From NCBI GenBank assembly GCA_020536535.1, contig JAHLWZ010000158.1, forward strand, positions 1 to 64,000: DNA of 64,000 nucleotides, read 5' to 3'. Of this stretch, positions 57,214-64,000 are shown one piece after another (the stretch's first letter is position 1; every line of letters starts with the position of its first letter). The stretch is from Pelomyxa schiedti. Taxonomy: Eukaryota > Protista > Evosea. A program made the translations under genes and the position numbers. The notes below the pieces were generated by a model. The model worked only from the letters and a program-made list of their open reading frames with translations, had not been told where the DNA came from and made no database searches.

Positions 57214-60200
57214 ATGTCACTGCTGCCCAAGAATGGTACCACTCTTTGTGCGAGCGTCTTTTGCTTTTGTCCTGTCCCTTCTTCTGTTTTTCCCTGCATG
57301 CACAACTTCTACTACACAACCGTGTTAACAAATCCCCTTTGTTGCAGCAGCGGCGGAGTTGACTGTTAAAAATGCGCGGCTCATTTTTGAGCCAAAGTCA
57401 CCTCCTGTGTCTATTGTTCCACCGCTCAAGGCGAGCAGTCCATCTCCACAACCCTCTCAGGTACCCCTTTGTGGTCATTCATTCATTTCCAGTTTTTTCC
57501 CTCACCTGTGCTGCTATAATTTCCTCTTGGTGTGCACTTATTTGCTACTTCTCAGACACGATATACTGAGAAACTAAAAGAAGTGGAAGCCCACTTGAAA
57601 GAAGAAGTTAGATCGACTTCGCAGTGAAATTGATACTCACACACAAAAAAGCAATCCAAGAATCTCATTTTGAAGAGAGAAAAACAACTTCTCCAAACTG
57701 AGGTTGAAAACCTCAAGTCGTTGTTGACTGCAAATAGCATTCCAGTCCCTGCTAGTCCCACAATGACCATTTCACTTTCAAGTTCATCTTCCCTTGGTCC
57801 ATCAGATTGTTATGCTGAAGAGCAGCACAGAAGAAGGGTTGAGACTTTTCTTTTTTTTGTTTGGCTTGAAGTTTACTCCGAATACAGGCATCTGAAACAG
57901 AAGATAAAACTCTCCTTCTGAAATTGTCTCTTTAATGTAGATATTCTATTTCCTTACATTTCTGCAGGCTTGAATCGAAGAGGTCAACAGAACTAGGAAA
58001 TGAAATCACCTCACTAAAAAAAGAGCTGAGTCAGGTATTCCGAGGTTCCTTGCACATTTCTTACACTAAGAGTCAGGCTGAAGACAAGATAAATGAGGTC
58101 AATAAGCAGTTGTACCAAGCCATTGAAGAAAAAAATTTATTGCTAAGTCTCATGAACGAAAAAATGACTAAACTGGATAAAACTAAGAAGAAAATGGACG
58201 AACTTGAGTTGCAAGTTGAAGAACACAAGGTAATCTGTTGTCTATTGGAGTTCATTCCAATTACTTCACAGAAATCCCTTCAAAATGAAGGTAGTAGAAC
58301 AGCTTCCGCTGTAGCTGAAAGAGAAGAGCTTCATTCAACTATTACCAACCTAAAAAACTCTGTTGAAAATCTGGAAAACGAAAACAAACTCCTGGTAACT
58401 ATCAACGAATACTATTTGATCTCAAAAAGTTCTTTCTTCACTCAGAGAGAACAAGAAAGTGTACTTCTTGAGAGAATCAAAGCTGAAACTAGTAAGAGGT
58501 CTGCTCCTCCTGTGATAAGGTTAGGGTAACAAATCTCCAGGATTGATCTTGAAAAGAATAGAGAATCAGACCAACAAAAAATTTTCCAACAACACCAAAT
58601 AATTCAAGACCTGGAATCAAAAAATGAGTCCCCACAGACTGCCTCTAACCCTGAAGCACTGATGTCCGCATAAATCTTCTCTTCTTCATGTAATATATTT
58701 TAGTCAACCAAGAAATCTTGAGCAAATCCTTGACCAGAACAACAGTTCTAGCTCTGCTTTGAAGGAAGAAATAAAAGTTCTAAAGGAAGAACTGGAGGCT
58801 AAATCCAAGCTCGAACAAGAAGTCATTGTGTGCAGATGGAAGTATTTAATTCATTCCTCAATTCCATTAGATGGCAACACAAAATTTCATGCAAGCAGTT
58901 CAAAAACAGAAGGAAGCCCATGAAAGTGAAAGACAGGAGTTGTACAAAAAATTAACCGAACAAAAACAAGAGTACACTGATTTGAAATCTCGATACAAGT
59001 ACCAACGAATTCCCTTACCTACATCTAAGTATATCATACTGTTATAAGTACTTACATTTCAACAAGAGCATTGATGAGACAACACTCAGCTGCTGAAAAT
59101 TCAGCGCCAGTGGAGTCTACCACAACGGAAAGAGAACTGGTGTGTATTTTTCCCTGACTACATTTCAGTTACATTCGTGTAGCGCCGAAAACACTCCAGT
59201 CGATCTGGGTTCTCCCTCTCCCCTGATCCAGTCTAAACTTACTTGCTATAGATCTGAGTCCTCCTCACTCTGTAGCAGTGAAGTTAATTACAATTCCCGT
59301 TCAAGTAGCCCCTGTGTGGAAGCTGCGGCGGCAACCATCAGCGGGCTTGTGAACGAGCTTATTGTAAGTGGTATGTAAGATATTAACCCGTTGTCGTTCT
59401 TACATTATGAAGAGGATACTTTTATACGGCAACTATATATACTTCGAATCGAATTTCTCAAACCAATGGTCAGTTTCCCAGATGATACATGCCCTATTAC
59501 TGAGTGTCACAATGTAAGTGTAAACAAAACTTCCTGGAACTGAAACTTTTTTGGAAGGTTCACAATTCTGTTGATGTACTCATTACTGCAAATTCACATT
59601 TCAAAGAATTGATGACCTGCGTAGCTCAAAAAACATTGCCTCTGAATTCTGCTTTCACGTTTCTTGTATTTACCTTCCATTTTGGCACCAACTTCTAACT
59701 TTTTCCTCCCTCCCTCATCCTTGGGCAGTGTGATAGCTTCAAGGTTTTCAGCCCCTCCTTTTTTCCCTCCTAAATTTTCCAAGGCATACAGAACATATTA
59801 CACCAGTTACGACTCAGCTGTAATCCATCTTAAAAATGGGTACAGAACAAATAAAAATTTCAGAAGAAGTCTAAGTGAGGTATGAAAAACCCATTGCATG
59901 CTGTGTAAATTGATCATTTACAAGTTAGAAGCAAAGGCAGCACCAAATTTGCCTTCTCCTGTCACTTCTCCCACCAAAACAGGAAAAATTTTCTTTGGTC
60001 TACTTCGGCTTCCCCTTTCAAGTAATTATGTTATTACATAGCACCTCACCCAACAAATAAAAGGAATTTCCGAATACTTATCATTCATGGAAAAAATTTT
60101 TCATGTTGACATTCAGAAACCTGAGCCACTCGTACAAGCACACAACTCTCTCAAATCGTTTGTAACTGAAGTTTCTTCAAAGGTTTTTTCCCTCCCCCTC

Positions 60201-60832
60201 TCCTCCTTGCTTCCCTCGGTTTAGGTAGTGGAAATCAAACATAAACTCAAAGTCGGGAAGATAGAGCAAAAGCTTGTTTCGTATCAAGTTAGCCTTTTTC
60301 ACTTTGCTACAAGAAACTCACTTCAAGGTAGGACCCGATACTACCCTCTGCGAAGGTTCGTCTCCCACTTCCTTTGTGCAACCTGAAGCTATCTAAATGA
60401 ACCCAGTTGAGTCAACCACAAAGAAGTTGGGTCTACGATGGTTCTCTGAAGGTAAAAACTAACACAGAGAAGAAACCCCGAGATAGATGGGTGTTTTTGT
60501 TCTCAGATCTTCTCCTGGAAACCAAAGTTCTGAAAAAAAGCAATCCCGGTAAGTAAGCCAAACAGCGTCTTGCACTAATTCACCTCATTCTTTTCGTTCT
60601 TTGCAACTGCACAGATGACAGCAAGTATGAATGCAAACACTGTGTAATGCTATCAACTCTAGACCTCAAAGACACCACCAACACAAACGAGTTCACCCTT
60701 ACCACAAGTGGCAAGGGCTCTTCCACAAGCATCACCTTTGCCTTCCTGTGTAATACCACATCAGATAAGGAAGTGTGGCTCAATTCACTAAATGGTGCAT
60801 TGGCCCTTGTTCAATCAAAGAGATCACTGTAA
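57214..60832 (+). CDS. Coiled-coil + DH-PH RhoGEF
   Basis: Long E/K-rich coiled coils; GLVNELIVS.EDTFIRQL, FSKAYRTYYTSYDSAV, LLRLPL; PH: RWVFLFSDLLLETK...DKEVWLNSL. Confidence 0.8.
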
Positions 60833-60919
60833 AAAAAAAAACAACAACAAAAAAAAATACAAAGGTAATAAATAGGATTTGTTATTTCTAAATCCCTTTT
60901 TTGCTTTTCTGTCAAATTA

Positions 60920-62393
60920 TTAGTGGGCTCGCCACCAAACACCCAATAAAAAGAGTGTCTCCACAGCACACCCAATGAGAATTGCTGAATGGTTTGTAAG
61001 CCAGAGTGGGGCTAGAGTACCATGTGAACAAGGATGGGTTTCAGAATCACTCGGGTGTGTGGTTGTACTGCTTGATTCTGCTGAAGAACAAGCTGTGTTT
61101 GTAGTTGCGGGTGTTGTGTTTGGAACCTCCGCAGCAGGTGGAACTTCTTGGGGTTCATGTTGGGAGGGTGTTGTGGTTTCTGTTCCGGTGCTCTCAGGAA
61201 GAATGGGTGCTGTTTCTACTACATCACATTTTGGCTTTTCTTCTTTTGCTGGCTCGGGTGGAGGTCCATCCAGCCGAACCCCAGTGATTTTGTCAACCCG
61301 AAACATGAGGTGCGCACCGCGGCTGTGTGCGTAGAATGTTTTGTCTTTCTGTACCCATCTTGTTTTGATTTGTTATTCATAGTATCTTAATGCTAATCAT
61401 ACTTGGTTGGGGCAATCTGTCGCCAAGCTCCTGGCGTGGATCCTCCAGTGTAGCAAATCCAGAATGCTTTCCGGCTGTTAATTCCATTTTCAATATATGT
61501 AGCTGTGCTTGTTTCGCTTGTGTTTTGGGTGCACGAAGTCACAGATGAAGATGCTGCTACAGAGGAAGACACCTGAGGGTTGGACTTCGGTGGGTTTTCT
61601 GAGGGAGAGGTGCCACTAGGGGTGGTAGAAAAATGCTGTTCGAGGACGACAGTGGTACAACAATTCTTCAATACTTGTAGGGTCATACGAGCATCAGCTT
61701 CACCACGGTGCTCTTCGTCACCCAGGTCAAAGTATTTTCCCAAGGTGTTCATTTTCATATTATCCACATGGGTACTGTAAACTTTAAATGAAGAAAGAGA
61801 CCAAAACAAGAATCACCTGAAAATTTTTCGTAGTAGAGGGAGTGTATCGATAACACCGATTGGCTGTGGAGGTTCTCGTTTCAATTTCTTAAATTCCTGC
61901 AGGTATTGAGCCATCAGATGGGTTTGTACAAAGCACGTACATCAAATATGATTGGGTTGTCGAATTTCTCAATGTTATGGCCAGCCCATATCCTGCCATG
62001 AAGAATAGTATAAATCCTATCAGCCACATCAGCGAAACTTGGCTGCCCCTGCAGCATTTCCTTTGTAATTTTGTTGCACTCTACACTCCTAGCAGTGACG
62101 TTGGGGGAAAACACTAGTGTTGAAAACGAGTCAACTTCGCGTAGTGTCTTCTTATTAACCACAACAGCTCCGAACTCTAGTACATCCCTTTCCTGGAAAC
62201 GTTGAGGTGAAAGGGGAAAAAAAAAAAACAAAACAAAAAAAAACCATAAAAACTCCGCGGCGAGCAGGGAACGGAAAAGAAAACGCACTTTGTAGGTTGA
62301 AGAAGGAATGGTAGTCTCAAGATCGTAAAACGCAATTTCTTCGGCTTTCGTGTCGGCAAAAGACCAACTGCCACCCCCATCACCTCGGTCCAT
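60920..62393 (-). CDS. DEDDh 3'-5' exonuclease (NEN/DnaQ-like) + WYL-like domain + C-terminal TM anchor
   Basis: ExoI FYDLETT, ExoII GHNIEKFD, ExoIII HRGEAD. Intron 61402-61359 joins FWICYTGGSTPGAWRQIAPTK to WVQKDKTFYAH...MFRVDKI. Terminal hydrophobic AILIGCAVETLFLLGVWWRAH. Confidence 0.85.
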
Positions 62394-62547
62394 TTGTTTT
62401 CTTTTTTTTTTCAAACGACCTGGTAATAAAAATCTGTTATCTCCAAATAGAAATGAGCCCGTCGTTTCGTATTTTTTAATTTAGAATTCGGTTATTTTCC
62501 TGTACAAATCAAACAAGGAGTGGCCCAGCAACAGAGGTGCATCACAA

Positions 62548-64000
62548 TCATAGTAACATAATAAGGATCATAGCGAGAGCAATGAGAGCAACGGCGGCGC
62601 GCGGCGCTGAACATGTCATGATCATCCCTTGTTCACATACATCGGGAGTGAAGCTCTGTTGCATGCATTCTGTGCAGTTGTCCCCGCAAAAGCCCACTTG
62701 GACTTGAGTGCCAACGCACGTGACGGTAAGAGAATAGCCGGCCTCGATGTAGGCACAGTCGTCACTGTACCACTCGAAGCCCATTAAAGAGTCTGCATTG
62801 CATGCCTCCATATCACTGTAGTACCAGATAACAACTCTTGAAACCCAATTAGACTCATATGCACAATGCTTGAGAGGGCAGAGGACCTACCCATAATCGG
62901 GTAGTACAACATCGCTAAGAAGCATGCATTGATAATCGTAAAATAGTGGTGTGAAGTATTCACAGCTTTGACCTACACAGCCCAGTTCTGGGTACCCATA
63001 AAAATAGGACTCACTTGTTGCGCAACCTTGCTCACAATTAAAACATCACTTAAGTCGTGAAAACGCACCATAATCATTATATGACTTCATCACTGTCCAA
63101 TTCATACTGGATGATGTAGCACACTGGGAAAGATCCCACGTTAATTTCCGAATCAAGGAAACTGTGGGAATTACCCGAATAATTGTGTACAATTCGGAGT
63201 AGGGATCGTATGTACATTTAAACGTTTCATCTACAAGGGAGTATGCGCATTTCTGGCAGTCTAGCCCGTCACACATTTCCCTTTGAACTTCACCACCAAC
63301 ACATTGGTAGGAGCCACTACGGGTGCGTTTTAAATTGTTGAAGCAAGTCTGTGAAAATCCGTCCCAAGCAACAACTTCTCCCTCACAGGTGCTAGAAGTA
63401 TAGTGGTTGTAGACTACAAAGCTGAAAGAAATTACTCTAAGATAAATAAGACACAAGTTACCTTGTGGTGAAGTTCTCCGGGTAAGGTTTTTCATCCCAG
63501 CACTCAAAGGACTGTTGATTGGTTACGTCACAACCCAGGTCAACACAACTGCTAGAATAGTATATAGAAACAGATACGATATCTCCGCCACATTCTGTTC
63601 GCATTAAATTTGTCATGTTATGGTTCAGTTATAATACCATTTGCAGTTGTCGGGCTGTGCTCATATTTTACTTGCCACCCCTCTACCCTCACAACACCAC
63701 AAGTCACACTGTAGTATGCACCTATATCACTTGCATCTGCCTGACGGCACGCCCCACTTAAATAACCTATTGTTGTTTCCTCACACTCCCCTGTGGTGTC
63801 ACAGTCTTCACAGGAAACAGAAATGACATTTCCAGTTTCGCCATCACATGCATAAAAACCATTGTTTGAGGTAGAAGAAATATCTCCGCAGGAAGACACA
63901 AGCAATCTCCAACTATCTCGAGTACCCCCACAACCAGAGCTACTATAAAATTCAATCATTGTGTATAACCTTTTTTTGTAACAAAAAATCAGCCAAAAAA
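62548..64000 (-). CDS. Cys-rich repeat surface protein with a C-terminal GPI-signal-like tail (5' end outside the window)
   Basis: Repeated Y-x-S-x-x-C...C modules (FYSSSGCGG, HYTSSTCEG, YSDMEACNA); ends SAPRAAVALIALAMILIMLL*. Confidence 0.7.

Follow-up and report, generated by a model that had tools for sequence, protein, structure and literature searches.

The window analysed here comprises 64,000 nucleotides of the amoeba Pelomyxa schiedti (contig JAHLWZ010000158.1, positions 1 to 64,000 of the forward strand, assembly GCA_020536535.1). Towards its end, on the minus strand, lies a gene encoding a NEN-family DEDDh nuclease domain fused to a WYL domain (NEN-WYL), followed by a C-terminal helix that is a candidate membrane anchor. 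The gene comprises 5 exons with 415 codons plus stop and 0 internal stops, separated by 4 introns of 96, 44, 42 and 44 nt, each GT-AG. The translated exon chain is a 100% match to KAH3766331.1 (P0001; 415 aa), named 'protein NEN1' by NCBI. The features of the gene and its product, including linkers rich in serine, threonine and proline (S/T/P), are as follows; pLDDT denotes the predicted local distance difference test of AlphaFold.

62289..62393, minus strand: exon 1 (aa 1-35), with the start codon and the ExoI motif containing D24 and E26; RNA contigs do not reach it.
62193..62288, minus strand: intron 1, 96 nt, GT-AG, phase 0, based on homology across the junction.
61941..62192, minus strand: exon 2 (aa 36-119), the nuclease core and the ExoII motif with D113; Pfam RNase_T for this exon alone gives E 9e-12.
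61897..61940, minus strand: intron 2, 44 nt, GT-AG, spliced out in RNA contig X1.
61817..61896, minus strand: exon 3 (aa 120-146).
61775..61816, minus strand: intron 3, 42 nt, GT-AG, spliced out in RNA contig X1.
61403..61774, minus strand: exon 4 (aa 146-270), with the ExoIII motif (H168, D173), the first S/T/P linker and the first half of WYL.
61359..61402, minus strand: intron 4, 44 nt, GT-AG, interrupting WYL; spliced out in the X1 and X2 contigs and present in DNA run X4.
60920..61358, minus strand: exon 5 (aa 270-415 and stop), with the second half of WYL, an acidic S/T/P linker and the hydrophobic tail.
60866..60919 (minimum extent), minus strand: transcribed 3′ untranslated region (UTR); the X2 RNA contig extends to 60866.
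61669..62330, minus strand: NEN-family DEDDh 3′-5′ exonuclease domain, assigned by sequence (aa 22-181), spanning introns 1-3.
61504..61623, minus strand: disordered S/T/P linker from nuclease to WYL (aa 197-236; pLDDT 42-45; 62% S/T/P).
61271..61503, minus strand: WYL domain (aa 237-299), spanning intron 4, with equivalents of DriD Y168, S172, R178, W206 (as F) and R207.
60998..61270, minus strand: second disordered linker, acidic (aa 300-390; 48% S/T/P).
60932..60988, minus strand: C-terminal helix (aa 394-412, then 3 residues), moderately hydrophobic, candidate tail anchor.

The RNA data are contigs from single-cell runs, X1 and X2 coming from one sample, with the DNA run X4 as comparison. 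Exons 3-5 are transcribed, and the RNA contigs confirm three of the four introns (2, 3 and 4) and read through the stop codon into the 3′ UTR. An earlier note on this DNA had named one 44-nt GT-AG intron, with its junction at 61402/61359; that intron exists, being skipped in X1 and X2 and not in the DNA run, but the gene holds four. An unspliced transcript ending at the stop at 61393 is ruled out, since the RNA contigs skip the intron at 61402-61359. Intron 1 has no RNA contig coverage and is supported by gap-free alignment with a Mastigella transcript protein; it contains no in-frame stop, and hence its retention is compatible with an open frame. At position 60936 the X1 contig carries 1 extra base, which would give the tail different final residues and leave it hydrophobic; this base is missing from X2 and from the DNA run and is probably an amplification error. 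In a genome search covering 52,367,397 bases in 5337 contigs (the published genome is 52.4 Mb in 5337 scaffolds; PMC8887013), run exon by exon, we found no paralogue and no other WYL gene, this count being a lower bound, and the NEN-WYL gene is single copy.

The nuclease domain is well defined. Pfam RNase_T (PF00929) covers residues 22-181 (E 1.5e-24, 87.9 bits against a cut-off of 24), and the DEDDh catalytic set is complete: D24, E26, D113, H168 and D173. The nuclease model has an RNase H-like DnaQ fold (Pol III epsilon matched at E 2.5e-11 in Foldseek), with the DNases Pol III epsilon, DinG exonuclease, TREX2 and ExoI as its top fold matches. Plant NENs, which belong to the same nuclease family, are 40-50% identical to it (E ~1e-43 to 1e-48). 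The intact, plant NEN-like DEDDh site described in the earlier note is borne out, all five residues being in place; in the tree a DnaQ-like outgroup splits from the NEN family with Shimodaira-Hasegawa (SH) support of 100. TREX1 and TREX2 are only 17-20% identical to the Pelomyxa nuclease in fold alignments and rank under Pol III epsilon, TREX1 has no WYL domain, and homologue searches yield NEN proteins and no TREX membership. By sequence, the Pelomyxa nuclease is a NEN and not a TREX, and it is predicted to be a 3′-5′ exonuclease.

The second domain is harder to detect. Residues 232-302 alone score 25.0 bits against Pfam WYL (PF13280), for which the gathering cut-off is 21.8, yet within the full-length protein the score is 19.8 bits, under that cut-off; the halves split by intron 4 hardly score (second half E 0.09), and a genome-wide Pfam scan does not detect the intron-split WYL. 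Among the 45 family members we assembled, 26 match Pfam WYL at E ≤0.1, and a WYL profile of all 45 retrieves only WYL proteins from the PDB at E<0.6 (BrxR, Pif1-WYL, DriD and PafBC). The AlphaFold model of the domain (pLDDT 94) comprises one helix and five strands in an Sm-like fold, whose first fold matches are DriD, BrxR, CapW and PafBC, ahead of Hfq (template modelling (TM) scores 0.71-0.83, Z 8.5-9.8), with a designed barrel tying at the top. The WYL domain suspected in the earlier note is thereby confirmed, as is its S/T/P linker, of which the protein has two; the one joining nuclease to WYL is ~40 residues long, disordered and of variable length across the family.

DriD, PafBC, CapW and BrxR, in which WYL stands between a helix-turn-helix (HTH) of winged type and a WCX domain, share the WYL fold with the Pelomyxa protein, and the Y-x-GGSTPG-x-x-R loop matches DriD. 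The Pelomyxa protein differs in having no HTH and no WCX domain, neither being found by Pfam search or in the AlphaFold model, and is not a transcription factor. In DriD, single-stranded DNA (ssDNA) is contacted by Y168, S172, R178, Y192, K202, R204 and W206, together with Y240 and R288 outside WYL; Y168 and R178 touch the ssDNA backbone, and Y168, R176, R178, Y192, R204 and R207 are conserved among DriD homologues (PMC9186387). By alignment with DriD, the Pelomyxa domain retains Y254, S258, R264, F289, R290 and K293, with three of the six conserved residues preserved (the Y168, R178 and R207 equivalents). The Y168 equivalent is invariant in all 45 family members and the R178 equivalent is arginine in 44 of them.

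Pif1-WYL helicases from Thermotoga, Deferribacter and Sulfurihydrogenibium resemble the Pelomyxa protein in that a DNA-processing enzyme carries a C-terminal WYL without WCX, and differ from it in being helicases, bacterial and devoid of a membrane anchor. Pif1-WYL 8bns is the second-best PDB match of the family WYL profile (E 2.9e-4), and in Pif1-WYL the WYL domain binds ssDNA by itself and links enzyme with substrate (10.1101/163188). By analogy, WYL in the Pelomyxa protein would be an accessory binding module: it would grip a strand and, via the flexible linker, raise the local concentration of that strand at the catalytic site, a tether role modelled on the Thermotoga Pif1 WYL serving its helicase.

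The earlier note had instead proposed a ligand-gated sensor nuclease, in which WYL holds the nuclease off until an ssDNA or nucleotide signal arrives, as an immune-type effector against foreign, prey or symbiont DNA. Binding of ssDNA by WYL domains does switch DriD, PafBC and CapW, ligand regulation of WYL-enzyme fusions was suggested by Makarova et al. in 2014 (PMC4012209), and two bacterial relatives described below lie in defence-like or mobile islands (one with HTH-WYL-WCX, PD-(D/E)XK and Mrr-like genes, the other with AbiE). However, the ligand site of DriD and PafBC is made jointly by WYL, linker and WCX, whereas here there is no WCX, the long linker joining nuclease to WYL is disordered and differs in length across the family, and the equivalents of DriD R176, Y192 and R204 are lost; other bacterial copies sit among housekeeping genes without a conserved neighbour. 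A single-copy gene with no sign of immune-type expansion speaks against an immune-type effector, and action against the DNA of prey or symbionts is disfavoured in that the gene was not recently gained from bacteria and most of its relatives have no anchor. Gating is the less likely because known allosteric WYL proteins rely on a WCX partner; it was not borne out, and we consider it improbable.

A different activity, 3′-trimming or decay of RNA, would have the Sm/Hfq-like WYL bind single-stranded RNA for the DEDDh domain to trim. The RNase_T Pfam family comprises RNases as well as DNases, the nuclease has ERI1 and ERI3 among its fold matches, the fold search with WYL places Hfq and Lsm next after the WYL proteins, and one family member bears a Macro domain. 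Against this, the nuclease has DNases as its top matches, both by sequence and by fold, the published WYL ligands of DriD, PafBC and Pif1-WYL are ssDNA, and plant NENs function in nuclear degradation (PMC10489895). We judge an RNA enzyme to be unlikely, to much the same degree as gating.

The NEN-WYL fusion is widespread in Amoebozoa, where it occurs in six named genera, Pelomyxa, Mastigella, Cavostelium, Phalansterium, Cochliopodium and Dermamoeba, and it is also carried by the chlorarachniophyte Lotharella. Further carriers are MMETSP transcripts, one with a nuclease domain near-identical to a Bigelowiella model, and genes from metagenomes whose contigs show introns or neighbouring genes of eukaryotic type. 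The Bigelowiella gene model (P0105) seemingly omits most of the WYL present in the matching transcript protein (P0016), and mis-modelling may hide WYL in other genomes. Several members are elaborated: one MMETSP transcript protein (P0006, 592 aa) carries a Macro domain at its C-terminus (E 4e-33), which may connect it to ADP-ribose signalling, four long members (P0203, P0270, P0069 and P0261) have extensions of 130-370 residues without a Pfam match, and the tail of the Phalansterium protein has additional WYL-like end motifs. Viral carriers amounted to only one weak, partial match. A WYL-only word search from one protist member retrieved only itself and was uninformative, and an Atlas feature search with WYL gave scores of ~0.8, which we treat as a lead only.

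Beyond Mastigella, the nearest matches are bacterial proteins of ~270 aa, 37-46% identical to the Pelomyxa DEDDh-WYL region, with a short linker and no tail where Pelomyxa has both a long spacer and a tail. When 185,579 species genomes were scanned with a strict pattern, 5 of them, from five phyla, contained such a protein, a count that is a lower bound and includes one protein ending before WYL. Against a profile built from the bacterial WYLs, Pelomyxa reaches 36 bits, compared with ≤3 bits for two ordinary WYL regulators; the fused WYLs therefore constitute a single subfamily, and a single origin of the fusion is probable. The same domain pair in the same order is seen in an ESM Atlas RNase_T + WYL cluster of prokaryotic fusions (147 members), and fusion of WYL to a 3′-5′ exoRNase in prokaryotes was noted by Makarova et al. 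in 2014 (PMC4012209); in the literature searched we found such fusions described as a prokaryotic architecture only, and no functional test of them.

The bacterial neighbourhoods differ, with no conserved neighbour among copies. In Desulfocapsa (L005:5759-16549, L011) the gene lies immediately downstream of an HTH-WYL-WCX regulator and close to a second regulator, and the island also contains PD-(D/E)XK, DUF2779, Mrr-like and UvrD genes; another copy adjoins AbiE and insertion sequences; others sit among housekeeping genes, one of them (L019:7339-10789) beside short fragments that resemble DNA polymerase III alpha (PHP, finger, HhH). Among catalogued anti-phage systems (PADLOC) there was no full-length system match, only domain-level matches to DEDDh and WYL.

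Trees were inferred under the LG+G4 model with partial sequences excluded. In the nuclease-domain tree Pelomyxa and Mastigella are sisters (96/94), and plant NENs form a single clade (100/99), which groups with NEN-WYL proteins of chlorarachniophyte type (98/96). Bacteria and eukaryotes intermix in this tree, with bacterial monophyly unrejected (approximately unbiased test, p-AU 0.33), whereas in the DEDDh+WYL tree one branch divides them (98/98). About half of the rows without a name were put with bacteria or eukaryotes on likeness alone. Neither tree is reliably rooted, and transfer between bacteria and eukaryotes may have run in either direction; a eukaryotic source for the bacterial copies would fit their shallow, patchy distribution against the deep eukaryotic branches. 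We propose that the two-domain DEDDh-WYL unit is old in eukaryotes, with one bacterial sister clade.

Contamination or recent transfer from a symbiont is ruled out by the four spliceosomal introns, the eukaryotic neighbours and the Mastigella sister, and recent bacterial transfer also by distance, the nearest bacterial row lying 1.2-1.5 substitutions per site away. Of the flanking genes, the convergent one at 59400-60832 (plus strand) is spliced and transcribed and encodes a C-terminal PH domain of RhoGEF/GAP type, its RNA contigs stopping ~50 nt from the 3′ UTR of the NEN-WYL gene. The upstream one at 62504-63969 (minus strand) is transcribed and multi-intron; its product is rich in cysteine, has a hydrophobic C-terminus, matches nothing in Pfam and looks like a surface protein.

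Plant NENs take part in nuclear degradation (PMC10489895). Their role in phloem enucleation cannot hold for an amoeba, and their NAC45/86-dependent expression is plant-specific. None of the plant NENs retrieved has a WYL domain or a Pelomyxa-type tail, NEN1-3 having an unrelated C-terminal domain where Pelomyxa has WYL. We found no WYL remnant in plant NEN C-termini (hhalign probability 0.15% for WYL against them), and no intron position common to the Pelomyxa gene and two plant NEN genes. Because the rows nearest to the plants and the bacteria both carry WYL, loss of WYL in plants would be the simplest reading. The plant NEN2 C-terminal domain (P0102:300-488) has no Pfam or PDB sequence match; an Atlas feature search with it returned clusters of giant viruses (Nucleocytoviricota) at 0.92-0.94, some with DUF2738 or DUF5871, whose proteins are probably ssDNA-binding proteins like phage T7 gp2.5. 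In plants, WYL may have been exchanged for an ssDNA-binding domain of viral type.

The C-terminal tail distinguishes Pelomyxa and Mastigella from their relatives. AlphaFold predicts a 24-residue helix at 391-414 (pLDDT 80-85), and residues 394-412 have a Kyte-Doolittle value of 1.78 over 19 residues with Glu403 in the middle. Only two of 86 WYL-bearing sequences have a hydrophobic C-terminus, Pelomyxa (1.78) and Mastigella (2.78), the other 84 reaching at most 1.36; the two tails lie at near-equal distances after WYL (116 and 113 residues). The Pelomyxa segment lies within ~30 residues of the C-terminus, as in tail-anchored proteins, and its hydrophobicity is marginal where that of Mastigella is clear. 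The tail anchor named in the earlier note thus stands as to position, predicted helix and a strong Mastigella counterpart, and is weakened by marginal hydrophobicity and the central Glu; overall, membrane anchoring of the Pelomyxa tail seems reasonably probable from these predictions. Moderate hydrophobicity combined with a basic tail end is also compatible with peroxisomal or mitochondrial targeting, so location at the endoplasmic reticulum (ER) is not to be assumed.

The protein begins with a DEDDh domain, continues through a long S/T/P spacer and closes with a hydrophobic helix, which is the layout of TREX1, a protein tail-anchored in the ER that clears cytosolic DNA (PMC11904002). The earlier comparison with TREX1 holds for layout and not for sequence. 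Since no more than two sister genera have the candidate anchor, the layout is a local convergence, and an anchor cannot account for the soluble majority of the NEN-WYL family. A rival reading is a soluble housekeeping exonuclease of DNA repair or nucleotide salvage, the tail in Pelomyxa being a helix that is amphipathic or binds protein and not an anchor: members besides Pelomyxa and Mastigella have no anchor, the Pelomyxa helix is marginal, and one bacterial copy adjoins the DNA polymerase III alpha fragments. Set against this are the transmembrane-like segment of Mastigella at the same place after a near-equal spacer and the 24-residue helix predicted in Pelomyxa. We judge a soluble enzyme to be unlikely, to about the same degree as the RNA enzyme.

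We favour, with about an even chance of its being right, a NEN exonuclease in which WYL acts as an accessory ssDNA tether and which is membrane-tethered in Pelomyxa and Mastigella. The NEN-family DEDDh domain would be an active 3′-5′ exonuclease on single-stranded nucleic acid, most likely ssDNA, supplied by the WYL tether. The Pelomyxa-Mastigella lineage would have gained the long spacer and the C-terminal helix, which probably holds the enzyme to a membrane on its cytosolic side, there to break down, as we propose, stray single-stranded DNA. Several observations weigh against this proposal. At the positions of DriD R176, Y192 and R204 Pelomyxa has A, T and L, the last where 36 of 45 relatives have K, and because these equivalents are lost ssDNA binding by the Pelomyxa WYL may be weaker. 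The full-length AlphaFold model has a predicted TM score (pTM) of 0.55. DEDDh enzymes include RNases, and an Sm-like fold, with Hfq among the WYL matches, can bind RNA. Insertion energies summed along the tail, with no position correction, come to +0.7 to +1.9 kcal/mol in Pelomyxa and -2 to -3.7 in Mastigella, and the two tails share no alignable similarity. A bolder version, in which ssDNA binding by WYL activates a membrane-tethered DNase for foreign or symbiont DNA, an independent TREX1 analogue from which the plant enucleation NENs descend by WYL exchange, strikes us as improbable.

Surveys have treated WYL as prokaryotic. Makarova et al. did not detect it in eukaryotes in 2014 (PMC4012209), and Mueller et al. 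in 2019 described it as limited to bacteria, their supplement listing seven eukaryotic entries, including two plants, one nematode and three fungi and no protist (PMC6789036); these seven are probably contaminants. In the literature we searched, with most subscription journals outside coverage, there was no report of NEN-WYL or of a protist WYL family, and the eukaryotic NEN-WYL family is apparently undescribed, its component domains and their prokaryotic pairing being already known. It was missed because most of its members fall below the Pfam cut-off. An intron-bearing, transcribed WYL family across Amoebozoa and chlorarachniophytes stands against that prokaryotic picture. For plant NENs, studied only in phloem, the family offers a likely WYL-fused ancestry together with small 270-aa bacterial relatives that are easily expressed, and two questions become testable: what the NEN substrate is, and whether a WYL attached to a nuclease controls its activity or just supplies it with substrate. 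Endosymbionts are abundant in Pelomyxa. The anchored form might possibly act against prey or symbiont DNA, and in Pelomyxa and Mastigella it may be an independent solution for the clearance of cytosolic DNA in amoebae.
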